Below, in pieces: positions 5,759-62,921 of a stretch of DNA of 64,000 nt. This stretch comes from Magallana gigas. Its lineage: Eukaryota. The first letter of the stretch is position 1. Each line of letters begins with the position of its first letter. The stretch lies in assembly GCF_963853765.1 (NCBI RefSeq), contig NC_088862.1, positions 23,002,001 through 23,066,000 of the forward strand, given 5' to 3'. The notes beneath the pieces were generated by a model. The model saw nothing but the letters and a program-made list of their open reading frames with translations, had not been told where the DNA came from and searched no databases. A program made the translations under genes and the position numbers.

Positions 5759-6358
5759 TTAAACAAAACACAGTAATTAAAGACAATCATTTTTGCAATA
5801 CTTCATGGTATTTCATACAATTACATATATATTTAAAATAGTTGAATGAAATACACACACTGCTATCAAACGTCGAGAATATTCATTGCACGCAAACATG
5901 TATATGACTTTGGATATTTTGGTCAGAAATTGCCTCTTCAATTATGTGTACAAGTATTGTTACATCATTATAATTTTTCATGATCGGATTTCAGCTAATT
6001 AAAGTACATGACTGTATATGAATCAGCAAGCGGAGGTTTTCTTAAACTAAAAGAAGTGATATGCTATAATTGATCTTTATCAAATCGTTTTTTAATTAAA
6101 TTTAACATCAGATGTCAAAAAGTCTGAGCTAACAACGACTCTTAATTGAACAGTTTTTACTAGTGTCAGCATCCTTGCTTATATCAAGCAATTTCCAAAT
6201 AATTTTTTTTGGACAATTGTCGTGTAAATATACGAAATGTGTTTCCAAAGAACAATAACAAATATTGATTGATTTGTTCAAACAACAAGTTTCAATACTT
6301 CTGTTGTAAAGGTGGCAACTTCGATTAACAAAAGAAAAATAATAGTTCATTCTTCTTT

Positions 6359-9300
6359 TCAGCTGAACACTCCATAGTCTCCAGAGATCTGGATGTGATT
6401 TGCTTTGAATGTGGTCACGTGACTGTAGTCGTCTTCCTCTGTGACTTGTTGTTGGGCGTATTCATAATCCGACTGTACAGAGAGCTCGATATGGTCTTCA
6501 TGTAAATGGTTATAAATGTCAATTCCTTCCTCCTCATTGTTGCTCATTTCATTGCAAGTTGGATTGGAGTTCATACTTTCCAGTGATATTTCCCCGTTTG
6601 ATATATAGGTTCTAGTACTTTGAGAGCAAATGCATAAAACATGTACATTTTACGTATAAAATACACGATGAGTAGAAAACGGCTTTTCAAAATATAGCAT
6701 CGATAGTACCTTGCGCTTGGTGGAAAAGTATAAAAAAAATATTTAGCAAACTAATAAACTGCATATCAATAAATGAGAAACATGCAGTGTGCTTATGATA
6801 AACAATTACAGACTAAATATGAATTTTCTATATTAATGAAATTTAAGCAGAATATATTTCTCTTGATCTGTCAGATTTTAGTTCTCAGGCACAAAAAATC
6901 ATTCGTCTAATATTAATGAACATGTATTGAACAGAAAAATATAGTAATCTACCTAAGAAATTGTTCAAATGCATTTGTTTGCTGTGTCATATGTTATGTG
7001 TTACCTTAATCCAGATTGGTTTCTTAACCGATTTATGATCAAGTTTAGTGCTCCACAAAAAGCTATTCCCAACAAAAGTCCGATCACTCCACTACCTATA
7101 ACAACGCCAGAGTTATGGTTCCCGACTGTATCTGTTTAAATTAGAAAAAGTAGATGGCAGTAAAAAAGTTCCTAATAAAAAAACTGGATATGGAATGTCT
7201 TGTTGTTATAATTCTTTTTAATCCATTTTTTTAAATAATCAATGACTCTGTAAAAGAAGTAGGTTAAATTGACGAGGGAGGAGGGGGAAATTCATGGATT
7301 TACAATGTGATTAAGAAATTAACGTACATGTATTTAAATTAAGCTGACGGATATGAAATCAAAGCAATAGCCTTGACTTACATATAGTCACATTGCAATA
7401 TCTGAATTAATGTGAAAAAAAAATATCTGTTTAAATTTGACAAAGTATATGGTATTAAAAAAGTAGATTAAATTGATTAAATTAAGTATATCTATCGTAC
7501 TGAAATTACACATGTAAGTTGACAAAAATGAAATCAAAGCAATACTTACACTTACATATACACACATTGAAAAAGCTGTACTTATTTGGAAAAAAAACAA
7601 CAAATCATTGAATATCTAAATCAAAACCATTTTGAGTAGCTTTCATCTTTTTCTACAATATTGTAGAAAATGGGACGGTAGTGATTGTTGACATTAGTCC
7701 TCATTAGATGGACAGTTAAAGTAGAAAGAAGGAAAATGTGTCTTTATACATATGTTACATCATTTCGGCGCCATGAGTCGAAAAAATAAATTGATTTCGT
7801 CAATATCAAAGTGCCAGTTATTATCTATTACTCGCGCAAATATCTTTTATCGATTTTGTTATTACCGTCAGTTTATCAAATTTTGAGTATCAAGTTGTTC
7901 TATTATATAGCATCTAGATCTGGTTGATATGTATTTTTGATACACGTATTATTAAAAAAAAACAAATTGTAGTACTCATTTTAAACACATTTTGTTATAA
8001 TGATTACTAAGTATTAAATTCAAACATCCTTTTCAATCAATGAATGATATTGACACCTACAATTGTAAATCGTTATAAAAAGGATTTATACATAATTGAC
8101 TTGTTTTAATTCAATAAAATTTCCACATAAAGATGTGATGGTTAATCCTTCAATGATCACAATCGCCAAAATTTAAAAACAAGCTTTGTGGGTAGGATTA
8201 AAAATAACCACGGGTTCAAAGCGCAGATCGAAATGCATGTAGAAAAAGTCAGAGCTCTTCCAGCTTTTATCCATGGATTACATGTACTACAAATCAAGAT
8301 ATGTTTGTTATGTTATACTTTTTGTTTCTTTGTTTATCTGTTTTTGTTTTAACTTTTTTATTGCCTCGTTTCGTTTTGTTTTGCGTTTCTTTGTTTCCTT
8401 TTTTTCTTGGTTCTTTTTGCATTTAAGAGAAAACTAAGAACCAAAACACTTAAATATAAGTCGTGATTTTAACTTCAAATGATATCATATATCACATTCA
8501 AAAGAGCTAGCAGATGTATAATATAACAATATACAAGCCTTTTTAATGTGTACGTCTTCACAAAGATCTGACATACACTCCTTGCAGATTTTATGTATTT
8601 TATCAAACAAAATACGACCTAACATATATAGAATAAATTGTTGGTATATCGGTCCTAAAATCAAGATTAAAACTAAATATTGAGAGAAGTACTTGTAAAA
8701 TACCAAACTCATTTAATTTAGATCAAGAGTTGCTTAACTGAGCGCAAATAATTTTAGTTTAACTGATAAATTGAAAAACAAAAAGATAAACGCAAAAAGA
8801 AGCCCCCCCCCCCCCCAAAAAAAAAGAAAAGGGGGGGGGACAACAAAAACAAAAAACACCCCCAAAAAATTAGTCAAAGGTTGATTGATCAGGTGGTCCT
8901 TTAAAGGAATCAAAGGATTTCACTTAGTTACTTTAAATCAAATGAGGTATATTAAAATACCGTTGACACGCGTGTCCACCACCATCACGTGACCAGCACA
9001 CGTACAGACCCCAGTGATTACATTACACATACCATTTGGAGTGGCCACTGAGCGTTGTAAAGCGTTGTCACATGATTCGTTTAGTCCAGGCTCTGTTAAA
9101 AAACCGTCACTAGTTTAAATAAGCAATCCTGTATTCACAGAATGGATCTCTGCCATTCAGTCAACTCAGTGTTAACTGAATGGTCTGGAAATGTGACTAA
9201 ATGGCTATAGCTATGCCATTCAGTCACATTTCAGTCACATTTCAGTTACCTTTCAGTCTCATTTTAGTTGACTGAATAGCAGAAATTCATCCTATGATTT

Positions 9301-12300
9301 TCATTCATGGTACATGTAGATATTAGAAAAAAATATAGTTATAAAATATAAAGAGCATGATGTAAAAAAAGAAGATGGGGAAAACGGTCATAATACAAAT
9401 AATATTACATTGTACCTTGAATGACTTGTTTATTTTTAACAGGCAAACGAGTGCTCTATTCTCTCGGTATACTTGTCACCAGCTTCACATGTTGAATACT
9501 GGCTTCCTCTTTCGCATTGCTTAGAGTCGAAACATTGTTTGCCTAGTCTACGAGGTGTATAATAACTGGTAAAACTGACCATTGATTGCACTCTCTAGTT
9601 ACGATGTTTAAAATGTCAAGTTATGTTACTATGTATCTGTCTGTCTTCCTGTCTGTCCGTCTTTATGTGCGTTAAATCACACATCGGATCCATCCTCAGA
9701 TTTCAAAGATAATTCATTGAAAAAAATTGCATTACTTTACCTGGTTCACAAAAGTCCGTCTTCCGATGGTACACATGACCTGTCTTACACTGACACATCC
9801 CACTCGTCTCGTTACATGTGGAATTGACACTAACACATTGCTGGTCTCTAACACAGCTTTCGCCTATTTTACGGTCTGTTATAAAAGAATAATTCATAGT
9901 GTACAACATTAAGGTGTACAAAAAAACCCCAAACAAACAAACAGGCTGATCTAAAATAAATGTTTTTGAGTTTTCAAGGGAGTGAGAAAAGGTGTTAAAT
10001 TAAATCGGAAAGGTATATTTAGCTACTAGCAATAAGCTACAAGTAACTAGCTACAAGAGTAAGATAGGTTCTATTTATTGGCTATTTATATCATGTAAAA
10101 GGTAGCTTCTAGTTTTATATTGTAATTATCTAAAAACGATTTTCCTTTGCGTCGAAATAGAAACTGAGTATGGTTATGTACAACAAAGTAAGGTTGCTAA
10201 TAATTATCTAAATGTCTTGAACAATCTTACCGTGAACATACTCTCCTGCACAACCAATGGTAATGTTAAAATGGGTATTGTCATAATCCCCACAGGCTTT
10301 ATCTCGCAAAAAATTATATGAAGATGACACAAAATAAATCTCCATCCTCGCTATTTCATATTTCTTTTCCATTTCGTGCGATATATTTGGATTAGTTGAA
10401 ACTATTGAACAATCAATCTGACACCTCTTAGAATCACCTACAAAGATAAGTGATTAATAAATAAAAACGAAATACCGTATACATTAAAACACGCTTATAA
10501 CAAAATGCCAGGGACGGGTGATTTTACTTTGTTATAAACGGAATTCGTTATATCCGTCAAGTTTACAACATGTAATAAAGTCAATTCATTATAAGCATGT
10601 TCGCTATAACCATGTTTTACTGTATATTTTTTTCCAGCGTGTATCCAATTTCCGCTTTGCTCGCAACGTTATCCCATTTGCGGAAAATAAGTCAGCGAAA
10701 ATGTTATACAAAGTTTTTATCCTGTAATAGAACTATATCTCTGCTTTAAAACAAAAAGATAGGTAAATGTACGATAAACAGGGTCTAACTACATGAACAG
10801 GTTTGTAAGTCTCATTGTTTATTTAAAATTCATTGGCTAGCTAATTCAATTGGTCACGTTCCTCGCTTTAACCGATGTCTAATAATACCTGAGCTACTAT
10901 CACCTGAAACGATGCATGCTTTTCTGATTTATGATTGTTCTATCTCTGAAAATATTTTCGGTAGTTATATCATATGACAGAATACGTGTAATTTATCTGA
11001 AATTTTCATTAAAATTGAGGAGTTAAAATATATATTAGATGCCCCCCCCCCCCTCAATTACGTATACATTACAGGTTGAAACAGTTGTGTATCAATTATT
11101 GTTATTCACTTTGACTGTAAAATATCAAATTTGTGTAAGTTCTACAAAACTGTTCAAGGTTCTAATTTGCGTTAAAAAAAGATGCCGCGGAAAAAACCTT
11201 TTAACTGGTAAATAATATTTTCACAATCAAACGTATTTTATAACTATTTATGTTTAACTGATGACAAAATTTGGGGAAATAAAAAACAATATAGACTTTG
11301 TAAATATTCGATTCAGAACTGTTCTTTGATATTGCAAAAAGAAAATAAACAATGCTGAAACACAATACAAATAGAAAATATCGAATGCTGCAACGTTTGA
11401 CATGCTAAAAGTTGAAAAAAAAAATCAAAAGAATATTGGTTATAATACCTAATTGGGATAGTTATAAAAATATCCATGGCTTATTAAGTGTTTTAGTCGA
11501 TGATGTATATTTATCTTTTTTTTAATAAAATAAACTATTAAAAACTATTTAATGAGAACATATGAATCTTTTAAAGCCATAAATATAATTGTATTATCGT
11601 AATAAGATACTTAGCTGAGAAGCACATTATAAATGAACAAGATTACCATTGAATAGTATAAATATATTAATCTATTCTTACTTTTGTATAATTTGTTGAA
11701 ATCATTGTAGTCAAATGCACAGGCTTTTTCGCTATAGTGGAATGAAAGAGCATCCTCAAGACAAATAGACCTAAAATAATTTTAAATAAATTTTGAGTTC
11801 ATAATTTTAGCCATTAATTGAGCTAAAAAAATACAGTATAACATGACTTAAGTTTAGCCTTACGGGAATATAAAAGATTCATAATTTAGCAGATATTTCT
11901 CAGGATGCACTAAAAGCCCTCTTGTTTTTAATATATCTTATCCTTCCTTTATAGAGAAGGAAAATACAATCCTAAAATACATGTTTGATTTTGTTCCAAA
12001 GTAAATAATGATAATTTTTTTTCTCTGTGCACACATTTTGACTGAAGAGGATCCTTGAACTAAAATGTTAACTAACAAATGTAAAAGAAAATAACTAAAT
12101 GAAAGATCTATAACCAATCAGTCACTTTTAACTAACCATTCAATCACCTTAAGTTTTTATTCAGTCACTTTTAAGTAGCCATTCAGTCACCTTTAAATTA
12201 CAAATCTGTCACCTTTAAGTTACCATTAGTCACATTTAAGTTACCAAGCAGTCACCTTTCAGTTAACAAAATGTTAAAGCTTAATTCTGAGGTGAATGGA

Positions 12301-12844
12301 ATAATAGTAGATAAATAATAACAAAGAACATGATATGATACCCTAAGAAGTCTACTTGTAAGAAGAAAAAAATCAAATACATAGAACCTACCTCACAGAG
12401 ACGTCAATAAATAGCAAAATGGTCATATATACTATTTTCATGGCATAAACATCTAAAAATTGGAAACACGTTGATAAAACGGTAGCAATGCAGTTTAAGT
12501 AACGAAATACAAAGTTTAAGCGTACAGTACAACTATACGTATAAAATATATATAAGGTTATATTATTGAATAATATATGCAAAAAAAAAATTCATTAAAC
12601 AATTGATTCTCCTCTAATAAACCCTAATAAAGTGATTTTCGCTTACCTCTTACTAAATGAATCAAAATTATAAACAGCATCTCAAGATCTCTACCATTAT
12701 TGAATTAAAAAACATGATAACATTTTTTAAAAGAAATTATAAATTGTAAATATTAAAGCTTAAACAGTAACCGTAAGACAACAACATTTCATTATCATGC
12801 AAAATATATATTTACTTACATTCACAGATACGTCGTGATTCCAT
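6359..12844 (-). CDS. Receptor A: type-I membrane protein (~303 aa) with signal peptide, novel Cys-rich domain, EB/EGF-like module, TM and Tyr-motif tail; exons (5'->3') 12844-12820, 12452-12392, 11770-11682, 10903-10889 (micro-exon, tentative), 10437-10231, 9875-9741, 7131-7005, 6611-6359
   Basis: GT-AG exons with compatible phases. Translation: MESRRICEYVYAMKIVYMTILLFIDVSVRSICLEDALSFHYSEKAC..GDSKRCQIDCSIVST..KACGDYDNTHFNITIGCAGEYVH-DRKIGESCVRDQQCVSVNSTCNETSGMCQCKTGHVYHRKTDFCEP-DTVGNHNSGVVIGSGVIGLLLGIAFCGALNLIINRLRNQ..DIYNHL..DYEYA..DYSHV..DYGVFS*. It is supported exon by exon by paralog B, including identical 25-nt and 89-nt exon sizes. Confidence 0.8.
9143..9292. mobile_element. Small TIR element (MITE) with internal TTCAGTCAC repeats; related copies at about 12110-12270 and 13360-13500
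   Basis: Left end GGATCTCTGCCATTCAGTCAACT matches the reverse complement of right end AGTTGACTGAATAGCAGAAATTCATCC; the CAGTCAC motif is iterated internally. Confidence 0.55.
9436..9555 (-). pseudogene. Degenerate or terminal second EB-like exon inside receptor A
   Basis: Minus-strand frame PRRLGKQCFDSKQCERGSQYSTCEAGDKYTERIEHSFAC* aligns to the EB exons of A and B but lacks the NETSGxCQC block and ends in TAA. Confidence 0.55.
10482..10622. mobile_element. Tc1/mariner-type MITE (TA|CAGT...ACTG|TA), copy 1
   Basis: Near-identical to 22339-22512 (AAAACACGCTTATAAC...GGGTGATTTTACTTTGTTATAAACGGAA); right end GTTTTACTG|TA. Confidence 0.7.
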
Positions 12845-24900: not shown

Positions 24901-25659
24901 TTAGAATATTCAGTATAGTGTTTATTTCCCCCTCAACATTAACAATTCTGACCTCAACATTAACAAAATTAGAAAATATGTAAGAAATCGTCATATTCTG
25001 TAGCACTGAGGATATCTTTCAAGAAATTCACGTAATAAGGGGTGATTGGGATTCCCCGGGGCCCCATAAGCACCGAATATGAAGGCCAAAATATTGGATA
25101 TTTGATTTAAGCCAGCCCCTTGAAGCATATTTCCACGGAATTTACTATTTTCACCAGGCTAGCTTAGCCTGATAATGGTCGTGTAAACCAAATTCCTTTG
25201 GAGGGTTGACTGAACATTCCTGGGGCCCCATCCTCATTAAATATTAAAGCCCAAATATGGGATACAGGGTTTTAGCCAGCCCCTTGAATAGTATTCCCAT
25301 TAGAACTGTATTTTATGAACTTTTCTTCTTTCACCAGGCTAGCTTATCCTCTTTACGGTCGTGTAAATCCAAGTATTTTTTAGGGTTGACTGACTTTTCC
25401 CGGGGCTCCATCCTCATCAAATATGAAGACCCAAATATGAGATAAAGAATGTAAGTTAACCCCTTGAAAGATATTCACATTAGAAATTCAATATCCGTCC
25501 TCAACTTCCTATCGTTATGACTGTTAGAAGATTTTAAGATGATGATATAATAACTAAGTGAACATTGTAAAGTATCAGTAATGAGGACATCAAGGTCATC
25601 TTATTTTCAAACGTCTATTATAAAATATACTTACATATTTTTATACAGCGGATCGCCAT
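15873..25659 (-). CDS. Receptor B: paralog of receptor A (308 aa); exons (5'->3') 25659-25635, 24818-24764, 22675-22587, 22245-22216, 21468-21268, 20861-20721, 16694-16571, 16256-16220, 16097-15873
   Basis: Nine GT-AG exons total 927 nt in one open frame: MAIRCIKIYVSAIQISCVLLNADFFVSSVCLEDIPLFIRSNKAC..DSTKGCHIDCSILST..QCINRNPSLNIRIGCEGEFIH-NRGIRERCDSDTQCENGTTNSFCNETSGFCQCKAGSLFLRESNTCSP-DKIKPCHTCLVMASGVAGLVLGVAISGIIYLIMKNR..DIYNHI..DYDHI..DYSHM..EYALVR*. Extra exons in the two N gaps (16307-16465, 18930-19057) cannot be excluded. Confidence 0.82.
16991..17104. mobile_element. 114-bp palindromic MITE with TAG-like termini and a 9-10 bp TSD (AcademH-like)
   Basis: Arms CTCGTTCAATCAGAC..TCTCCGACAAGC / GCTTGTCGGAGA..GTCTGGTTGAACGAG. 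The direct repeat ATTGAACTC flanks it at 16982-16990 and 17106-17114. The superfamily call is inference. Confidence 0.6.
19075..20698 (+). mobile_element. Non-autonomous Helentron/HINE-type element carrying a satellite array
   Basis: Head AAACAAGAGGCCCAGGGGCCACATCGCTCACC, central ~166-bp tandem array, (GAC)n microsatellite at about 20580-20640, and 3' palindrome GCTCACTTGAGCC-AAA-GGCTCAAGTGAGC. This is the layout known for oyster HINE elements. Confidence 0.85.
19426..20410. repeat. Satellite array, about six units of 157-166 bp (Cg170/HindIII-like)
   Basis: The anchor AAGATTTTCTC recurs at 19426, 19591, 19753, 19910, 20076 and 20242; the units are homologous along their whole length. Confidence 0.9.
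21586..21615 (-). pseudogene. Duplicated copy of receptor B 30-nt micro-exon carrying an in-frame TAA
   Basis: aag|AA ACC CAG TTA GGG TCA GAA TTG TAA CCA A|gttaaa versus the functional cag|AA ACC CAA GTA GGG TCA GGA TTT AAA CCA G|gttaaa at 22245-22216. Flanking intron sequence is also duplicated (about 21490-21720 vs 22140-22330). Confidence 0.7.
21679..21916. repeat. Two (GA)n microsatellites (about 21679-21728 and 21860-21916)
   Basis: Directly visible. Confidence 0.95.
22339..22512. mobile_element. Tc1/mariner-type MITE, copy 2
   Basis: TIR CAGTAAAACACG / CGTGTTTTACTG flanked by TA on both sides. Confidence 0.8.
24001..24157. repeat. Long palindrome (about 65-70 bp arms), loop GCGCGTTAGCGCG
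   Basis: AATCATGATTTTTTGAAGTATACACTCTCATAACTGCCGC and its exact reverse complement ending at 24150. Confidence 0.9.
25040..25490. repeat. About 2.5 diverged tandem units (164-180 bp) in intron 1 of receptor B
   Basis: GGGGC(C/T)CCAT recurs at about 25058, 25222 and 25402; TTCACCAGGCTAGCTTA and GGGTTGACTGA each occur twice. Confidence 0.8.
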
Positions 25660-28181
25660 TATCTTGTTCACAGAACTTTTTTTCAAAACCTAAATAAAAA
25701 GAAACATTAATAGAAAAAAAAATGATGTACGCTCATTTAGGTGGAAGATTAAACGACATTATTTAAATAAATCTACACTGTCATTCAGAGGAAAGCTGGT
25801 CTGGTTATTTTTTTAAAATAAATTATTGGTTATTATAAGAATAATTTAATCTTCATTAGAGCAAGGCATTTGTATAAATGAAAGAAAATTGGTTAAATTT
25901 TAAATGTACACTATTAAAACATTTACAAAATAATACTTCATGGCTAAGAAATATTGTCTAGTATCTTATTGCAGATCTCATGATTTAGTTTTTGAGCAGC
26001 CAGCCTCCTAAATAGAAACAAGGCTTTTTGGTGAAAAAAAAATAATCATCAGATAAATACAACTCTACACAATTGTTATAACACAAAATTAGCATTATGT
26101 GTCATATAAGAGACCAACGACGGCATTATATTATTTTCAAGTAATCGAGAGACCCATTTGACAAAGTGCTTACCTGACAGAAATGCCAAAAGTTGACCAA
26201 GATATTTACCTTCTTATATGATTTATAAATGATCTATTAAAAGACTATATACTTTTTTCACAGCTTCTTGTATAAAAGAGCAAAATCTTCTGTGTTAAAA
26301 ACATAAACTTTACCCAATCCTTCCTGGTATTTTTTATCGTTAAAAAGGCAACGATCTTCTAGGATATGAAAACAGGAAAAAGCTCATAAGACATTTAATA
26401 TTGGTATATTATTCTTATGTCTAATTTACAACGTAACATTTATCATATCATAAAGTACAAAGCCGTGTATCTTGTGAATTTAACTCACATGGATCTAATT
26501 TTAGTTGACTACTGCCCATTTAAACCATATCGATATTTATTTCATTTGGTAAGTAGCTACATGATTTTACATATGCACAGGAGTTATAAACTCATCAAAT
26601 TCGTATGTTACTATTTGTTTATCATTTAACCTAACACTTAAAACACCAGTTTACTATTAACACATGCAAATCCATCCAGGGTAAAAATGTTCAATGGAAA
26701 TAAAGCCCCAAATGTCTCTCAGATACATATCACCACCAAAGATAACTGGGATATTGTTAGAAACATATTTAAAATTTGATGTTTAACGTTATTTTTGTTA
26801 GCTAGCACAGTTAGCATCACATTTCTGTGAGTTAACAGTTCATGCACTGTCAATATAACGCAAAAAGAAGTCAATTATCCCGTGCTTGTTTCATGCATAT
26901 GATTTCTATAACCAAAATTAAATATACCCTTCGCTTTGTTGAAAAAAATAAACAGCATATAAAATGGTTTACTTTAATTTGCAATAGAGTTTTCGAAAAT
27001 CTAATGATACATGCATCATAGTTTGGACCTGATTTCATTCAGTGTGCACCATCTTATGTCTATTTGATTTTAAGAAGAAAATACATATAATGATGGAATG
27101 TCATTAGTTACAGAGTGCAGTTACGGAAACGTATATGGGCTAACACTTGTTGTTTCGTAACCTACCTATTGTTCCCCCTTTCATTGTTTCGTTAACATAT
27201 ACAGTATAATTGTCATCTTTAATTCATATAATTGGTTTTTATGATTTGACATGATTTGATTAGCTAGGCAAAAAATGTTGACACATCAATTTTGCGGACG
27301 CAGGAATTCTTTTAGAACATTGAACCACTCTCAGTCTGAATCTACATAATTTTTTAAGACCAATTTTTGTTCATGTCATACCATCTGCTTGTTTGTTTTC
27401 TTTTTCCTCCTAGGCCTCATATTTTATAAAGTGCTAAATGCCTAAAGAAATGGTATCGCTGGTGATACGTTTGTGTACAAAATCATTTATCATTTCAAAT
27501 ATAACCATCGCAGGCGGCTTTAAATTGTTTCAGGAGATGCAAAGTGAAAATTTTAACATTTCTTTACAATATACATTTCTGTTCAATGAACAATAAAATG
27601 CATAGGAACATTTAATTGATTTCTATAACAATAAAGCCAACTAAAATGCGTTTCTTCAAATAACGTCGTTTTTCAATGCAAAAAACTTTAATTATATAAT
27701 TTAACATTAACTCGAACTGCATACATAACATCATCATTTTGTAGTTGCTAAATATATTTGAAAAGTTTTTTGGACGTGTATGACATTGTCGATATGCATG
27801 CGTATATTTTCTTTCAATATGGACAGAAGGTTTGTGTAAAATAAAAATATTATATTTAAAATTGCTCAGGAACCAATAAGAAAATCCGATAAGTTATGTA
27901 AAGTACACATCCGTGTCGACGTCTTCACTTTGATTGTAATACACTTAACTGTAAAAGCTACCTATTTGCCATGCTTTTAACACGAACATTTTTTCTTTAC
28001 TTTTAAGTGTACGCTTTTATGAAAATATTTACTCTCTTAAAAGCTTTAATCTGATCTTAAGTTCCCTTTTCCCTGTATGAATTGATTTATTTCTATATTG
28101 AAATTAAAGCTTTCTCATGGATTCAAAAAACTTAAATTAGTATGAAACCTGCTGATAAGAAACTACTTTCTTCAAGGCGAT

Positions 28182-31100
28182 ATGAAGTTTCACGTTGTAA
28201 TTGTTTTTCTTTTCTTTTCTGGAAAACATCAAATGAGTCACTCATCCAAAGCGGAAAATAAGTTTGTTTACGTGCAATCTGGCGAGACACAATCAAATTC
28301 TTGTATACTGAACGAGTTTGCAATAGATAACTCGACAATATCCGCTCAATTACAATGTGGAATGCCTTGTAATGCTCTTACGCAATGCGTTGGAGTGGAT
28401 ATCGTAGGAGACGAAGCAAAAAGCTGTCGCCTTTTATACGGCTTTCCTGCTCTGATACCATCTGACACAATATCAGACGATAGATATCAGAAGGTAGTAT
28501 ACTTTCCTCTTTATATGTCTGAATGCGATCCTTTTTTGTATTTGATATTTATATGTATTGTTCTTTTGTTGTAGTCAACTGGAATCAGCATTGGTAAGTT
28601 GACCCTTTAAATTCTGATTAATTTAACATTTTCTTTGGTAGTAAGTTACATGCATGAATAAGATGAAAATTTGAATTCTTTATATTGATAACGATTTAAA
28701 TCATAGAAACACTAAGTTAAACTATTTGAAATAAGTATTAGCTATAGTTCAATACTCAGATGATATATAAATGGAAACAAATATCTCTAAAGAATTCATA
28801 ATATAAAGCTTAAGATCAAATTAATGCCTGTAAAAACCAAACGGCGGTGGTCACAAATACTTTCATTTTTTGCAACAGTATAATGATAAGCAACAAATAT
28901 AAATATTTTTTATTATTTTGCAATATGACACTTAAAGTAATTCAATGACCAATTGGGAGTAATTGGAACAATTTAGTCTCCTTAGATTAGAACAATTCAT
29001 AACATTTTCGAATTAACTACAAAAACTGCTGAGAAATGCATATTTTTGACGTGTTAAGAATACCCAAACTAAAAACACAACCCTTTATAATGCTGCTTCT
29101 TTTTTAACTCGTTGTATGATGCAAATGTGGAATACCAAATTTTGATATCTCCTGATGATAATTACACATTGATTCATTTAACACATAAGTAATCATTGTT
29201 TTAGGAAATTGAGATTTTCATATATGGTCGCGGATAAAAGATTCCAATAAACTCAAAAGGCTTTATGATTAAATTTATCACGTTTGACAATATTGGTCAC
29301 CTCATAGTATTTATAAAATAATTTGTTTTTACTTATACAAGGGTTGTTTTACAATTGTGTGGACAATTGGCGTTCTTCTGTTAATAGGAGACTCAAAGAA
29401 CAAACATGTGCCTCGAAGAGTTTAATATATTTGCATTAAAACAATGCGTCAATCTAAAATATGTATGAAATTAAACTAGAATGATAAAAACATGCTAAAT
29501 AATTAAATCGACCGGCGGCGCGCAATGTTAAAAACAAGAATTTAAATCAACATAAGAAAAAAAACAATTAATATATTGAATTTTTTTTCTTTACCAAATA
29601 TATAGTTTGACCATTATAGAGTTTTCAAAAATTTACTAGCGCATTTTTCGACAAGTTAGAGTTTGAATTCATAGTTAAATTGCCATGTCATCGTTTGAGG
29701 TTACGCTGTGGTACAGTCACATGCAAAAGAAATTCGGTCACAAAATGGCGGCGTGCTTACATTGGTGACGAATGCACAAGAATAAAACAAGCTTAATTTC
29801 TATTAAAACTTATGAAATAAAAAAAACAACTACTTACGGTTTCATATTTTGTTAGGTGTCCTTTAAGTCTGATGACCTGTTGAATACGATTGGGAATAGA
29901 TCCATACAAACTTTTAATGTAAGCAGGCGTAATTTGAGTCCAAATTCGCCGAATTTCCTCGATCAAATTTTCCTTTGATTTAATTGCGCCACAGCGTTAT
30001 TGAAGTTTCCTTTTAATGAAAAGCCACACATTTTCAATAATATTCAAGTCTGGTGACTGGGCAGGCCAGCTAAAAAAATGGATTCGATTTTTTGCAACAT
30101 ATTCTAGTGTTGATCTGGCTCGATGGACGGGGGCGTTGTCGTCTTGGAAAAAAATATTCATTTTGGGGGAAATGTCTAGCAAGAACGGGCCATAAGTTTT
30201 CTTCTAAAATGTCTTGATATTTGGCAGCATTTATGTTTCCTTCTACCGGCGTCATATTCCCTACGCCTTCCCAAGAAATGCACCCCCATATCATGACTTC
30301 ATACTTAGCCTGTGAATTCCGCTTCTCAACGAGGTTGGGTCGCCATCCTTCGTCTTTTTTCCTCCAAATCCGAACTCTCTTGTCATGGCCAATCATGATT
30401 TTACTTTCATCTGAAAAAATTACACGTTTCCAATTCTCAACTGACCATTGTCTTTTTCCCCGACACCACGCAAGCCGCTTCTTCCTATTGTTTTCCTTTA
30501 TAACAAGTTTCTTCTTAGCAACACTCCTTCTGTAATTATTTTTATTTAAATTATGTTGAATAGTCCTTCTACTCACTGGTTCAGGTCTTTCCTCGTTAAA
30601 TTTGGCAGTGATATCTGACAGGGAACACCTCCGATTTGGTTTTACAATCCTTTCTAGCTTGCGATAATCCCGGGGCTTGATTTTTGGAGGCCTGCCGCTT
30701 CTCGGTTTGTTTTCTAGGGAACCCGTCTCTGAAAACCTTTTGCAAATGTCAATAACGGTTGATTTTGGTATGGCTATAACAACTACGTTTTCTTTATTTG
30801 TAAACAAGCAGACGATAAACAAAAGTGTCATGTGATATACCACGTGACTAATTTCTAAATTTAAACAATTCTACTTCCTGTAGTGCTAAAATTGTCGGAC
30901 AAGGTCGTTTATTTTTTACTTTCGTTTTCAAGCGTAAACACGCCGCCATTTTGTGACCGAATACTTATTGCACGTGTCTGTATATGTAAATAATACAATT
31001 TTGCGAAGGTCTGAAAATAAATCCTCATATGCTCAATTACTCTAGCGTCAAAGAAAAAACTAGACAAGTATGGTGATATCAAGTAAAAAAAGAAAAGAAA

Positions 31101-34100
31101 AAGCGACCGATTGTAAGATACATAAAAAGGCTAAACAATACATTTTAAGAAATATACATTATACAATAAGACATACGGGACTACTTTTGAATCTCCGAAT
31201 CGTTTGTACAGGTGCAATATTTTTAACTAGACATTCCTTGTGAATATGCATGCAGGACACATGCTCAAGGATTTTTTTCATGATATGTTCTGAGTTCATT
31301 CCTTAAATTTAGAATACATAGACAGAACACATAATTTATACATAAAAGCTGTCGACTGAAATTTCATAAGACTTCTTGATTCTTTTCCCTTTTCCAAACA
31401 ATATCCAAGATTTCAATTCCGAGATCTAAATATTTTTTTTGACGAAAACAATAAATAAAAACAAGTTTTACAATGCAAACCATTGCAATGAATTAACCCC
31501 GAACGTGTTATGGAGAAAAAAAGTTTACATACTAATATATACATAGATTACGACAATAAACATTGACCAGCTTTAAAGAAAATAGTTCCTTATTGGGCTT
31601 GTATCTTTTAAACTAAAAGTATTTTAGGATTCAATGTTAAAAGTGTATCCCTACCATTAATTATGATGCATATTTTACATGGGACTGTTTTATATCGGGA
31701 ATAGGGTANNNNNNNNNNNNNNNNNNNNNNNNNNNNNNNNNNNNNNNNNNNNNNNNNNNNNNNNNNNNNNNNNNNNNNNNNNNNNNNNNNNNNNNNNNNN
31801 NNNNNNNNNNNNNNNNNNNNNNNNNNNNNNNNNNNNNNNNNNNNNNNNNNNNNNNNNNNNNNNNNNNNNNNNNNAAATATCAAACAATAATTCTGAAATT
31901 CATTTCGTGTTAAATTTACTTGGGCTGCATCTTTCATCATCATTTCATTTTAAAATTACTAAATAAAATGACAACCTATCAAAATTAAATCTGCTTTACT
32001 TTGTACGTTAACAACCTAAATTTTGGTCTTGTGTTTCTGTTGCAAAAGATGACAATTTTTCAAAAGCAATCTATACATGTGTATGCAAAATTTATAGGAA
32101 ACTGCATTTTGAAAACTCTCGGAAATTTTATGTTGATATTTTCTAAATACATTGTAATTGTAGCTCCAACAATGTTTGCTTTATAATGAGATGAAATGCA
32201 TTAATTTTGAACAAAGAATATTCTTCGTCTAAAAGAAATATACAAAATTGTACAATTTCACTTAGAATGATTTTTGTACATGTATATTCAGACACTTGAA
32301 TGAATAAAAATGCTTTCCATATACTTTGATGTAGGAACAGATTATTATTGTTCTGTGCAACTAACGAATGGGCAAATCATATCTATATTGTGCAGTAAGG
32401 GGACTCATAAATGGATGGTAAGATAATATCTCTCCCTGTCTTTCTAACTGTCTGTCTGTCTCTTTCTCTCTCTCTCTGTGCATGCTATTTTACACATGTG
32501 TGGGTGCAGGCAATGTGTTTCTATATGAAAACTTACTGAATTAAATACTCCAATGACTCTTTTTTAGAAGTTTTTGCCCCCCCCCCCCCCGATAACAGTT
32601 GAGGTTTAGTTCCATCCGTTTAAACGTATCTTTTCATATTTGAATGAAAATAAATGTTGCCTATCAGCATGAAATGGGATCCAGTACCGCCTCCCTTATT
32701 GCTACATTCCTGATTAACTTTGAGTTACAGAGTGAGAATATTTTTACAGAAGTTATCTCTCTTATCAGAAGGACATTCAACTTAAAGCATCTTAACTCCA
32801 ACAATTTAACTTCGAAGCGATGATTCTGGTTTAATGTTTGTTTAAGTTTTTTTTTTAAATTTTCCTGTTTATTGTTAATGTCAACTCAAACTACGAATAC
32901 ATGTAATAACTATTAAAACCATATGAAATCACACAATAGCACACTCTTTTATATATTTGGTAGGACTCTGTATATTTTTATACGTAATACATTCACTGCT
33001 TTATTTTGTTTTTGTTAATGATGAAAAGCTCATTCAGAGACGGTTTGATGGATCAGAAATTTTTAGGAGAAACTGGATAGACTACGAAAACGGCTTTGGC
33101 TCTGAAGAATCGGAGTTTTGGATAGGTAAGGATACTACTAAAGTCTTGCTAGAAAAGAAAATCCGCTTAGACTTGACCTTGAGAAACAATTTACGTACAT
33201 TAATATGCATCTTGAATGAAAAATATTTGTACAGTCAGCTGTACCACAATTTTTGCTATATTCTGTTTTTTCTGAATGTCAAATCATATATTAAAGAACG
33301 GATACCGTCCACTTAACACACGATTATATTTTAACTGAATGACTTGCCAAATAATAAGGTTATCCATTTTTTATTTTCTTTTAATTATTTTTTTTATGTG
33401 AAGGTAACCAGAAAATCCATGAATTAACAAACGATGGTTACACGTATCTTCGAATAGAAATGATGGACCATGACTGTGTTTGGAAATATGCAGAATATTC
33501 GACCTTTTATGTTCAATCTGGCAGTTCCAAATATAAACTGCAAGTCAGTGGTTATAGCGGGAATGCAGGTACTGTTTGTCTTTTTTCTCCTACGTTCTCA
33601 ATTCACTATTTTTGATAAAACAAGTATACAATAGTGCAAGGTGTATCGACCATTTGGGTTTCGTTGGGAGCCATCTCAAAATACAGGTACATTTACTTTA
33701 GGAATGTATAAATTGTCATTTTCCGAACTTCGAAACAGATTTAAAAAAATACTACAGTAGCGAGTGTTCTCAAGTTGTAATTCGTGATAAGTAATATCAT
33801 TTTGTACTTTATAGGTGAAAAAAACCCTAAATTCTACTTAAAGTCTGCTTATTGGAAGGGGGGGGGCATCTCAAGTAGTCTTGGTGTTACCTGGTATGGA
33901 AGCATAACCGCGATCAACATGTAGACAGCTTTACCGTTGCCCAGAAAAATGCACCAGCCTGTAACATCCCCTCCCTTTTTTTGGAGGGGGATATGGCAAC
34001 CGTAATGACCCAGCTGTGCGCCTTCCAGATAACATACAGATAATGACTGCTGACCCCTAACCTATCTACTCTTGGAACAAATTAAAAGCATACATAACAT

Positions 34101-59622: not shown

Positions 59623-59941
59623 ATGCAGTTTTGTTTGTTAGGCTACTTTCTTACCTTTATTGAAGTGTGTTCCTTTGCTTTCTCACGCGTTACGGTCAAT
59701 AATTTTGTTCGTGAACAATCTGGCGAGATTTCATCCTCTGAGTGTAGTATAGACGAATTTCCTGTAGACAATTCAACAACTTCTCCACAAATGCAATGTG
59801 GATTACCGTGCAGCTCTTCTGACCTGTGTATCAGAATGGAAATCATTGGAGAGGAGGCGAAACAATGTCGTCTTTTGTTTGGATTTGATTTTTTGAAATC
59901 ATCACATAAAACTTCAAAACAAGTCATTCGATATCAAAAGG

Positions 59942-59987
<46 letters not shown>

Positions 59988-62921
59988 ATTAAATCTATAA
60001 ATCATATATAATTAAAAGCATAACATTTTTTAACAATTTCAATAATGAGCACACTAAATAAAACTAATATTCAAGAAGATCGGAAAAAGACATTGTACGC
60101 TATTTTGGGACAACCTTCGTACTTGTAATACAAATGTACAAGTATTTTGGTTTTCTTTATATCATTGTTTTTGATGTTTGATATAGCTTACAGGAACCAA
60201 TACTGGTAAAATTATTTTGCATAAAAAAAAAAAAGAATGTTGTGTGCTTGAGGTGTTTTTTAATATTGATGACATGGAGAAATTCCGTGAATGTCATATG
60301 TGAAAGTTGCAATAGTTTCAATCAGCATATCAATAAAACAGAACATACATGTATCTGAAATGCCAAAAAAATATACCTGGTTTATAGATGAGACTGTTTA
60401 CCCACTCCATGCTTGCCAAAACAACACTATAAAATATTACTTCATCAAATTCAATCAGCTTTATCATTTTACAATTTATGCGGTGTTTTAATCTTTGATA
60501 CGCTAACGAATATCTCTTTTTTGCGCTTCACAAAATTGTAAACATTATTAAAATAATTTATCTTCCTATTTGCATCGGCATTTTTAAGATAAGATATAAT
60601 TATCATAAAGCAAGCAATACAAAAAATAATGTTTCCTTCCATTTTTCTCATTTACATCTACAGACTTTAAAGCAGTTTGTGTTGTGGAGTTCGGAGTTAA
60701 TCAAAACCACTCTCAATTTTGTGATAGTTTATAGAAAAACCGTGCAAGAATATAGATGTTGTTATCATTAAAACACAATAATGTAATATTGTAAAGTTGC
60801 AAGAACGCAAGCGTGATTTTTCTGTCTTTTATATCACTAGGAATGATGTCTTTTACTACATTTGTCATTTTTTTTCGATGTAAAAATTAAAAAGCTCATG
60901 CAGAGACGTATCGATGGATCAGTGAATTTCACGAGAGACTGGGCGGATTATGAAAACGGTTTTGGATGCTTGGGATCCGAGTTTTGGCTTGGTATATTCA
61001 TGTTATCATTTTGTAATAATGCATATCATACATCATAATGTTTTTTTTTTATTAATTTATGTTTCTTATGGCAATCTTAATTTCGTGTTATTGATTCTTT
61101 AATCTATTAAAACAGTAACGACTTCACACAACCAAACACTAAAACGATCCCAAAAAGTTGACCCTCAGTCCTCTTTTTATCCGCTTGGGGTTATCTGGTA
61201 GGGGTTCTGCATTATTAGAAAATTTGGTCTGAGTCCGCTCTGGGTCTGTAATGAACTTGACTAAAACCAACCCTTTTGTTCCGCTTTACACACTAAGTTG
61301 AAGCAGACACGTCTTTTAAAACTGCCCATAAGTCCAAATATTAATCACAAATATGCAGATACATCTGGTTCCTTTCAATGCAAATTTAGTGTCTTTTGAT
61401 GAAATCAGGGTCTGCTTTATGTGTTTATATGACTAATACATGTAACTACTTAGCTCTAGATCTACCATAACAGACCCTGGTATGATTGGAAAACTAGCGT
61501 ATTTCACTAATATCTACTTAAGGTCAGCTCTAGATCTACCATAGCAGACCCTACTTTGATTGGAAAATTAACGTATACCTCATAAAAAATAGTTCAACTC
61601 CAAGCAATTAAAATCAGTTTACTTGATTTCATCCAACTCTATCATAAGTTTATTATCGGAAACAAACATATGGTTTTTTAAAATTGTCAATATATATTTT
61701 CTTTTAACGAAAAATAATGTATACGTTTAGGTAACCGGAATGTTCATGAATTAACAAATGATGGCTATACGTATCTCAGAATAGAACTGATGGACCATGA
61801 CAATGTTTGGAAATATGCGGAATATTCAACATTTAATGTGGAATCTGGCAGCTTCAAATATAGACTCCATGTCAATGGTTATTCAGGAAATGCAGGTAAA
61901 TTAGTTCATATCATGTGAAATCAATTTAATATTGTTGACTGTGAATACCTGTCGACGCTAGATTCACTTATATTCAAATCGTCATTTTGAATTCTACAGT
62001 ATCTCGTTCGCTAATATATAATCATGCCGATTTAAAAAAAACTGTTTTACCTACAAAAACAGTTGTCTTCTTTTTCGTTTTAGGTCTTCTAATTTTATTA
62101 TGCTGTGATTATGCTTATGACAGCACATTTTAAAAAAATAGAAGAACTTTTTAAGAGTTATTAGCAATAGTTTAATTGGATTATTCAGGCAATATGAATC
62201 AAACAATTACCAAATATATTAAATATTTTAAAAGTAAAAAGAGATTACATTCATTCAAAAGAAATTAATGCAGGTTTCTAAATGATTTAAAAGGAAAATA
62301 AAAATAAACTTATTTAGTTTAACTTTAGGCAGATGCACATTACTTAATATGTTATAATAAGGTTGAAACAAAGTTAAAGTTGAATGACTGTACGAAACAT
62401 TTTCAAAATATGTTTTACTTTAAGATTTATTGATAAGTATTAGAAATCATTTATATAATTATAGATATCAAGTACTTTAGACCAAACACATATTTTTGGT
62501 GTTAAGTTTAATACCTGGATTTTGTTAAACTACTGTTATTTCGAAATTCACATTTTTTTTGCAACTTATTGGAAAGCGTATATATTTCCTAAGATCTTTA
62601 CAATAGTAAGGACACGATCTTGATTTGAATTTTTTTTCTTCAAACCGTTTTTCTGTATTTTCGTTATTCTGTATTCCAGGAGACAGTTTATGGCTCCATG
62701 ACGGAATGTCCTTCACTACGTACGACAATGACAATGATAACAATGGGACTGTTAACTGTGGATCACTTTTTCGTGGAGGCTGGTGGTATCATACATGTCA
62801 CACGGCAAACCTTAATGGGGAGTATGGGAACACTATAAAGTCCAAAGGGATCAATTGGTATTACTGGAAAGGTTTCTATTACTCAATGAAGGAAGTCAGA
62901 ATGATGGTTCGAAAACCCTAA
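59623..62921 (+). CDS. FReD paralog 5: divergent PAN/Apple-like + fibrinogen-C protein; exons 59623-59940, 60187-60205, [exon 3 not found], 60895-60991, 61731-61895, 62680-62921; exon-skipped variant or pseudogene
   Basis: All recognisable exons are open with canonical splice sites. No 83-nt exon ending TGGATG|GT and no following (CT)n tract exist between 60206 and 60894. Splicing exon 1 directly to exon 4 (both phase 0) keeps the frame; including the 19-nt exon without exon 3 shifts it. Confidence 0.75.
61450..61575. repeat. Two-copy 74-bp tandem duplication in an intron of FReD paralog 5
   Basis: AGCTCTAGATCTACCATA(A/G)CAGACCCT..TGATTGGAAAA starts at 61452 and 61526. Confidence 0.85.

Follow-up and report, generated by a model that had tools for sequence, protein, structure and literature searches.

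What do the scattered coding segments between positions 6359 and 25659 of this stretch encode, and do they form genes at all? The stretch, hereafter the window, comprises 64,000 nucleotides (nt) of chromosome C10 of the Pacific oyster Magallana (Crassostrea) gigas, from 23002001 to 23066000 (23.00-23.07 Mb of a 564-Mb genome), and is AT-rich, with a GC content of about 0.30. A first-pass annotation had assembled by hand two paralogous spliced genes of type-I receptor layout here, gene A and gene B, and had remarked that neither is present as a whole gene in the list of open reading frames (ORFs), which is correct but merely how spliced eukaryotic genes look. RNA contigs (for gene A), RefSeq models and hydropathy support the two genes and their layout. 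Both lie on the minus strand with eight exons each, and their translated exons are identical to RefSeq entries of M. (Crassostrea) gigas. We conclude that gene A and gene B are real and belong to an uncharacterised, oyster-restricted, receptor-like family. The explanation that best fits the data, to which we give a probability of roughly 0.6 as a whole, is that they are tandem paralogues in a small, tandemly duplicated family, found so far only in Ostreidae, whose members would be type-I receptors signalling through tyrosine phosphorylation.

The structure of gene A is as follows, in transcriptional order (coordinates are those of the window unless C10 is given).

12820..12844, minus strand: exon 1, 25 nt, with the ATG at 12844 and a GT donor, from the sequence
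12392..12452, minus strand: exon 2, 61 nt, hydrophobic leader, AG/GT borders, phase 1
11682..11770, minus strand: exon 3, 89 nt, cysteines 1-2 of the N-terminal domain (N-domain); junction 10437/11682 in contig X2 record 11
10231..10437, minus strand: exon 4, 207 nt, core of the N-domain with four cysteines; junction 9875/10231
9741..9875, minus strand: exon 5, 135 nt, EB module 1; Pfam EB match of 32.5 bits; contigs X2 and X5
9439..9573, minus strand: decayed EB-like remnant in intron 5, weak EB match of 16.4 bits, not spliced in
8961..9092, minus strand: exon 6, 132 nt, phase 1-1, degenerate second EB-like module with 4 cysteines
7005..7131, minus strand: exon 7, 127 nt, predicted transmembrane (TM) helix with GLLLG; RNA contigs
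6359..6617, minus strand: exon 8, 259 nt including the stop; juxtamembrane linker and acidic tail with four conserved tyrosines

The RNA evidence for gene A covers 6470-12469 and consists of Logan contigs of three runs, two of which are only guessed to be RNA, and of raw reads of poly-A RNA from a fourth run. Junctions 10437/11682 and 9875/10231 both occur in contig X2 record 11, junction 9092/9741 is found in contigs X1, X2 and X5, junction 7131/8961 in X2 and X5, and junction 6617/7005 in X5, with X2 sharing the last of these but carrying a divergent 14-nt allele. The junction ends read CT..AC on the plus strand (GT..AG when read along the minus strand) for all except 10437/11682, where the contig has GTC in place of 11682-11684 and the listed ends are therefore CT..TT. 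Identity to the window is 97.7-100% for the X5 contigs, whose junction sides are short (27-30 nt). Stranded raw reads over the exons are few; in all of them the first mate maps to the plus strand, which is what the usual libraries should give for a minus-strand RNA. Exons 1-2 are outside the stretch covered by RNA data, and the joins between exons 1, 2 and 3 are also present in the A-type transcript-derived protein P0110 and in RefSeq protein P0109. Corrected in this way, the coding sequence of gene A measures 1035 nt and specifies 344 amino acids (aa) in an open frame of eight exons with canonical splice sites; P0109 and P0110 are both 344 aa long and identical to it in architecture. The structure of gene A, as well as the splicing and transcription of the A type, can be regarded as established, and so can the domain content, family size and taxonomic range treated below.

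The seven exons first proposed for gene A, the last of them at 6575-6359, are all recovered with AG/GT borders and give an open frame of 861 nt (286 aa), but the model lacked the exon at 8961-9092 and placed the last acceptor at 6575 instead of 6617, a difference of 42 nt or 14 aa. The RNA contigs confirm four of the junctions proposed at that stage and make both exon 6 and the new acceptor necessary. As for the exon sizes given for genes A and B, those of 25, 61/55, 89, 207/201, 135/141 and 127 nt are right, while the 124 nt given for the TM exon of gene B should be 139. The only in-phase AG of the remnant at 9439-9573 is followed by a stop, and junction 9092/9741 bypasses it. Nothing but the small exon sizes would favour the idea that hand assembly had strung unrelated ORF pieces together by chance, which is refuted by spliced RNA contigs, public gene models and conserved paralogues and orthologues and to which we attach practically no weight.

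Contigs of the RNA runs are also found over introns 6 (7103-8791) and 5 (9206-9770) of gene A, at a depth close to that of junction 7131/8961 and about 1/4 to 1/3 of that of the exon-5 contigs. They may represent intron retention, unspliced pre-mRNA or DNA carry-over.

Gene B (15873-25659) is made up as follows, with two assembly gaps that both lie in introns.

25635..25659, minus strand: exon 1, 25 nt counted from the ATG; isoform X1 of RefSeq begins further upstream; P0004, P0047
24764..24818, minus strand: exon 2, 55 nt, leader; RefSeq protein P0004 is identical here
22587..22675, minus strand: exon 3, 89 nt; sequence and RefSeq P0004
21268..21468, minus strand: exon 4, 201 nt, core of the N-domain; sequence and RefSeq P0004
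20721..20861, minus strand: exon 5, 141 nt, EB module; Pfam EB 21.6 bits and cysteine pattern
18930..19057, no strand: assembly gap in intron 5, which is 4 kb long and separates the EB exon from the TM exon
16571..16709, minus strand: exon 6, 139 nt, predicted TM helix with GLVLG; open frame, AG/GT borders
16307..16465, no strand: assembly gap in intron 6, at a distance of 106 nt to exon 6 and 51 nt to exon 7
16220..16256, minus strand: exon 7, 37-nt micro-exon that restores the frame of the tail; used by RefSeq P0004
15873..16097, minus strand: exon 8, tail with four conserved tyrosines and YNHI-x11-YDHI

Exons 1-5 are identical to RefSeq protein P0004 / XP_065930053. Gene B had been described as phase-consistent, which does not hold: the proposed exons (25+55+89+201+141+124 = 635 nt) arrive in phase 2, phase 0 is required to enter the conserved tail frame at 16097, that frame has a TAG just upstream, and the 37-nt micro-exon had been omitted. 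A TM exon of 139 nt together with the micro-exon yields an open frame of 912 nt, and the resulting membrane form of 303 aa is a predicted product. The 124-nt version of the TM exon is also in frame, but was rejected, as the paralogue protein starts at the position of the 139-nt acceptor. This paralogue, LOC109618214 (P0061), resembles gene B in having a TM exon, then a homologous exon of 37 nt and a tail exon in phase 0, and its cluster includes transcript-derived members. In its RefSeq model, exons 1-6 are at C10 22954173-22963947 and the micro-exon and tail at C10:22811106-22811461, which is 143 kb away; the intron may be very long, or else the cluster may suffer from an assembly or haplotig problem.

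The public models of gene B raise the alternative that it is mainly a soluble protein of N-domain and EB module (decoy- or opsonin-like), or a gene on its way to becoming a pseudogene, with the TM and tail exons as unused relics. The TM exon is skipped in each of the five RefSeq proteins of gene B, which end with the tail frameshifted (P0004, P0047) or stop early (P0048), the model of the M. angulata orthologue (P0049) has no TM exon and stops directly after the EB exon, and the 90% cluster with the gene B models holds only NCBI members and no transcript-derived protein. Against this, the TM exon, the micro-exon and the tail are all open and jointly restore the frame exactly, the micro-exon is meaningful in frame only with the TM exon included, these three exons are likewise in use in LOC109618214, a transcribed paralogue, and the tail of gene B retains the four invariant tyrosines and their flanking motifs; the gap in the intron between TM exon and micro-exon may, moreover, have upset the automatic models. 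We rate a soluble or relic gene B at clearly less than an even chance, although it is the most serious of the alternatives, and retain the membrane form as a predicted product. No coding frame of gene B spans either assembly gap, and a hidden exon within them appears unlikely, because P0061 has no residues between the exons corresponding to those that flank the gaps.

With respect to the extracellular part, exons 3 and 4 encode the N-domain of about 100 aa, whose six cysteines are invariant or nearly so over 26 family N-domains. No Pfam match was obtained for it in the exon translations of genes A and B or in nine full-length relatives. An AlphaFold2 (AF2) model of the N-domain, built from the family alignment, has two short helices and a four-stranded sheet, with a predicted local distance difference test (pLDDT) score of 70 and a predicted template modelling score of 0.62. 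Compared with AFDB clusters, this model returned only matches with E > 1; the best match among 48,161 PDB representatives (VIA-align) had Z 2.5, template modelling scores against the ESM Atlas were no higher than 0.39, and an ESM Atlas feature search with the N-domain gave no usable match. The first-pass annotation called the six-cysteine domain novel, and in these Pfam and fold searches it has indeed no match; we do not claim a new fold, since the model is of moderate quality only (pLDDT 70).

The only Pfam domain matched is EB (PF01683), with a gathering cut-off of 24.3 bits. Exon 5 of gene A lies above it (32.5 bits), exon 5 of gene B just below (21.6 bits) and the relatives score 34-113 bits, with the six-cysteine EB spacing present in the first module (EB1) of both genes, so that a true EB module in each, as proposed at the outset, is supported. 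The other sequence marks listed then, namely C-x5-C..C-NETSG-x-C-Q-C..C, GLLLG/GLVLG within the TM segment and a tyrosine tail, are likewise all present. Gene B has one EB module and gene A two, the second of which is degenerate, keeping 4/6 cysteines and giving no Pfam match, and is also found in P0109, P0110 and P0113. This degenerate second module and the decayed third remnant of gene A indicate that the number of EB modules, which varies among family members, has changed through exon duplication and decay. EB is a 45-aa module of unknown function, and while the gene A module, over the cut-off and with the six-cysteine pattern retained, resembles those of other EB proteins, this likeness leaves N-domain, TM segment and tail unexplained.

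The family is larger than the pair in the window. We find at least 10 copies in the M. gigas genome, every one of them on C10. We count 10 tail exons and at least 8 N-domain exons (of the gene A exon 4 type), which lie at 22.76-23.03 Mb and, in the case of two further genes, at 34.48-34.51 Mb. The C10 blocks at 22.79-22.81 and 22.97-22.99 Mb are nearly identical to each other and may be either recent duplicates or uncollapsed haplotypes. For the A-type copy at C10:22804409-22805098 only TM and tail exons were found, and a duplicate that has been truncated is the probable explanation. When 1.84 billion representative proteins were searched with a profile of the N-domain exon, there were just 46 clusters at E <= 0.001, whose named members come from M. 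gigas, M. angulata, C. virginica and Saccostrea cucullata only, all Ostreidae, and whose unnamed members are transcript or metagenome fragments. In the genome itself the tail profile found nothing beyond the 10 family copies, which means that, at HMMER sensitivity, the tail is not common to other receptor families of this genome; a word-based protein search with the tail alone (P0007 residues 296-368) returned the query and one relative only and is uninformative on wider sharing.

Both genes are already catalogued in public annotation and hence not new to databases. RefSeq holds gene B as XP_065930052-56, an A-type protein of 344 aa as LOC105327864 and a B-type protein of 298 aa as LOC109618214, all labelled 'uncharacterized protein'. 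These entries are the same genes or close paralogues and share the exon architecture described here, with the difference that the gene B models XP_065930052-56 omit the TM exon. A literature search retrieved no paper on these LOC numbers, nor on 'EB module' with C. gigas, and papers on MEGF10 in Crassostrea had no bearing on the family.

Turning to the membrane layout, hydropathy peaks are found in gene A at residues 6-33 (leader; 19-mers) and 223-252 (single TM segment, GLLLG), and in gene B at residues 2-31 (leader) and 180-210 (single TM segment, GLVLG). An AF2 full-length model of P0109, which is 96% identical to gene A, has a TM helix at 231-256 and an unstructured tail. These features point to a type-I single-pass topology with the C-terminus inside the cell, and the TM helix would bear a glycine-zipper or GxxxG face. 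The tail of about 90 aa is acidic, predicted to be disordered, and contains four tyrosines that are invariant family-wide, in the contexts [DN][IV]YNH[LI]HE (Y1), DYDH[VIC] or, in gene A, DYEYA (Y2), DDYSH[MVL] (Y3) and G[ED]YG.[IV] (Y4). Y1 and Y2 are 15 residues apart in gene B and 16 in gene A and most others. Compared with the tyrosine-based activation motif of immunoreceptors (ITAM), YxxL/I-x6-12-YxxL/I, the gene B sequence YNHI-x11-YDHI fits. The distances of 15 and 16 residues both fall within its x6-12 window.

The best-supported guess at a function is a tyrosine-phosphorylation receptor with Draper-like ITAM spacing. Each gene would encode a type-I single-pass membrane glycoprotein with a cleavable leader, followed by an alpha/beta domain of about 100 aa with six conserved cysteines and no known relatives, the EB module or modules, the TM helix and the tail. 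The ectodomain of N-domain and EB would bind a ligand, receptors would cluster, aided by the GxxxG helix, a Src-type kinase would phosphorylate the tail tyrosines, and SH2 proteins, e.g., oyster Syk, would dock and bring about a cellular response such as uptake or adhesion. Such signalling is plausible because of the Draper-like distance between Y1 and Y2 and because an ITAM-Syk-ERK route is documented in C. gigas. In Draper the ITAM tyrosines are Y934 and Y949, with the consensus YxxI/L-x6-12-YxxI/L (PMC6219719). In C. gigas the ITAM receptor CgIgR recruits CgSyk and acts through the ITAM-Syk-ERK route (PMC6994640). Like the proposed products of genes A and B, CgIgR is a type-I receptor with a tyrosine-based tail motif, from the same species, so that downstream machinery exists, but it has five Ig domains, a classical short-spaced ITAM (PMC6994640) and no sequence relation to the family described here.

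Several observations weigh against this reading. The leader and TM calls are based on hydropathy alone, and the full-length AF2 model is poor (pLDDT 47). The gene A pair YNHL-x12-YEYA misses the consensus at position +3 of Y2, where most members have V, C or A (YDHV, YDHC), leaving gene B as the only fit to the strict consensus. The RefSeq isoforms of gene B, like the M. angulata model, lack the TM exon. The long X2 contig with junctions 9875/10231 and 10437/11682 carries paralogue-like variants in exons 3, 4 and 7 and is an allele or a chimera of A-type transcripts. Finally, topology, phosphorylation, a ligand and any immune role are our inference.

A further alternative is that these genes represent, in oysters, the Draper/CED-1/MEGF10 family of engulfment receptors. 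Among the relatives in C. virginica, some bear the automatic names 'cell death abnormality protein 1-like' or 'MEGF10', and the overall layout is alike, being that of a single-pass type-I protein with cysteine-rich EGF-like repeats, one TM segment and a multi-tyrosine tail with an ITAM-spaced pair (15-16 residues apart; cf. Draper Y934/Y949, PMC6219719). However, no Pfam match above cut-off to EGF, laminin-EGF or EMI, the defining domain, was found in nine family proteins, and EMI is likewise absent from the exon translations; exon translations and nine relatives gave EGF-type matches below threshold only, with no long array of EGF or laminin-type EGF repeats. The oyster proteins have EB modules instead of many EGF repeats, only one or two of them here, an N-terminal domain that is unrelated to Draper and without a Pfam match, and V, C or A at Y2 +3 in most members, and NPxY (NP.Y) is found in neither A nor B nor eight relatives. 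We therefore consider membership in the Draper family very unlikely.

If ectodomains had diverged strongly while the rest was kept, as the first-pass annotation supposed, the comparison of A with B should bring this out, and it does not. The amino acid identity between the two genes is 41% in the N-domain, 51% in EB1, 38% in the TM region and 43% in the tail, with ratios of nonsynonymous to synonymous substitution rates (dN/dS) of 0.42, 0.19, 0.59 and 0.32, respectively, dS between A and B being saturated (~1.2). The dN/dS is below 1 in every folded part and, by these alignments, the ectodomain is no more diverged than the tail. Gene A and its closest paralogue A2 (C10:22980928-22987567) are 85% identical over the whole protein, with a dN/dS of 0.75, and per-domain counts for this pair are too small for selection calls.

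This pattern is of interest for a further alternative, in which the family consists of non-immune membrane proteins of adhesion, development or tissue matrix, with tyrosines that serve endocytic sorting (YxxPhi) and not SH2 binding. A dN/dS below 1 throughout and an ectodomain that has not outpaced the tail agree with it, as does the fact that EB modules have no established immune function; motifs of the form Yxx[LIVM] also suit AP-2 sorting signals. Yet four invariant tyrosines in acidic contexts with fixed spacing across genera exceed what sorting needs, and tandem expansion with variable module numbers is typical of recognition receptors, although this last point is circumstantial. On balance we hold the non-immune alternative to be unlikely, if only somewhat more so than a soluble gene B, and keep phosphorylation-dependent signalling as the preferred reading.

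The introns of the two genes contain several repeats. A short dispersed repeat is present in intron 3 of both (10479-10624 and 22336-22514), its copies being 93% alike. This match was rejected as a sign of paralogy, as the element is dispersed genome-wide: a first look gave more than 1600 candidates, spread over all chromosomes, and the depth in RNA contigs is very high (650-1565), with many variant copies. It looks like a short interspersed nuclear element or a miniature inverted-repeat transposable element, and a search of 6000-26000, which includes it, found nothing in Rfam. Intron 5 of gene B has a tandem array at 19414-20406 (units of ~166 bp, 5.5 copies, 79% alike) and its intron 1 a two-copy repeat of 180 bp (25149-25485); an (ACG)n run occupies 20583-20643, and there are two (GA)n runs, 21679-21728 and 21860-21916.

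Beyond the receptor pair, we observe the following features in the window.

28182-28571, 49015-49410 and 59623-59997, plus strand: three paralogous ORFs of 125-132 aa with a leader and conserved cysteines, QCG.PC...QC...CRLL; no Pfam match
30073-30843, minus strand: Tc1/mariner-type transposase remnant (HTH_Tnp_Tc3_2, 48.8 bits), beside a gap at 31709-31874
32957-33313, plus strand: open frame with a fibrinogen C-terminal domain match (Pfam PF00147, 44 bits)

The PF00147 match indicates a fibrinogen-related gene on the plus strand beside the receptor pair, and each of the three ORFs with leader and cysteines may be the first exon of a gene in a tandem family, perhaps that of the fibrinogen-related genes.

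Since the genes were already catalogued and their function is only inferred, the value of this analysis is modest. In practical terms, both gene models are corrected, and the public models of gene B are flagged for a TM exon omitted beside an assembly gap. Oysters depend on large, lineage-specific receptor repertoires that are mostly unstudied, and the combination of an unclassified extracellular domain with a conserved four-tyrosine tail, in a species with a demonstrated ITAM-Syk route, makes a direct biochemical test possible. A more far-reaching idea, which we regard as speculative and improbable, is that the N-domain with its six cysteines has a new fold and forms the head with which oyster-specific, Syk-coupled, ITAM-like receptors bind their ligand, with copy number, EB number and TM skipping diversifying recognition. 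If this were true, skipping of the TM exon would set a membrane receptor against a soluble decoy, as in the gene B isoforms, and the family would constitute a lineage-private innate receptor system with a logic comparable to that of fibrinogen-related proteins (FREPs) or Draper.

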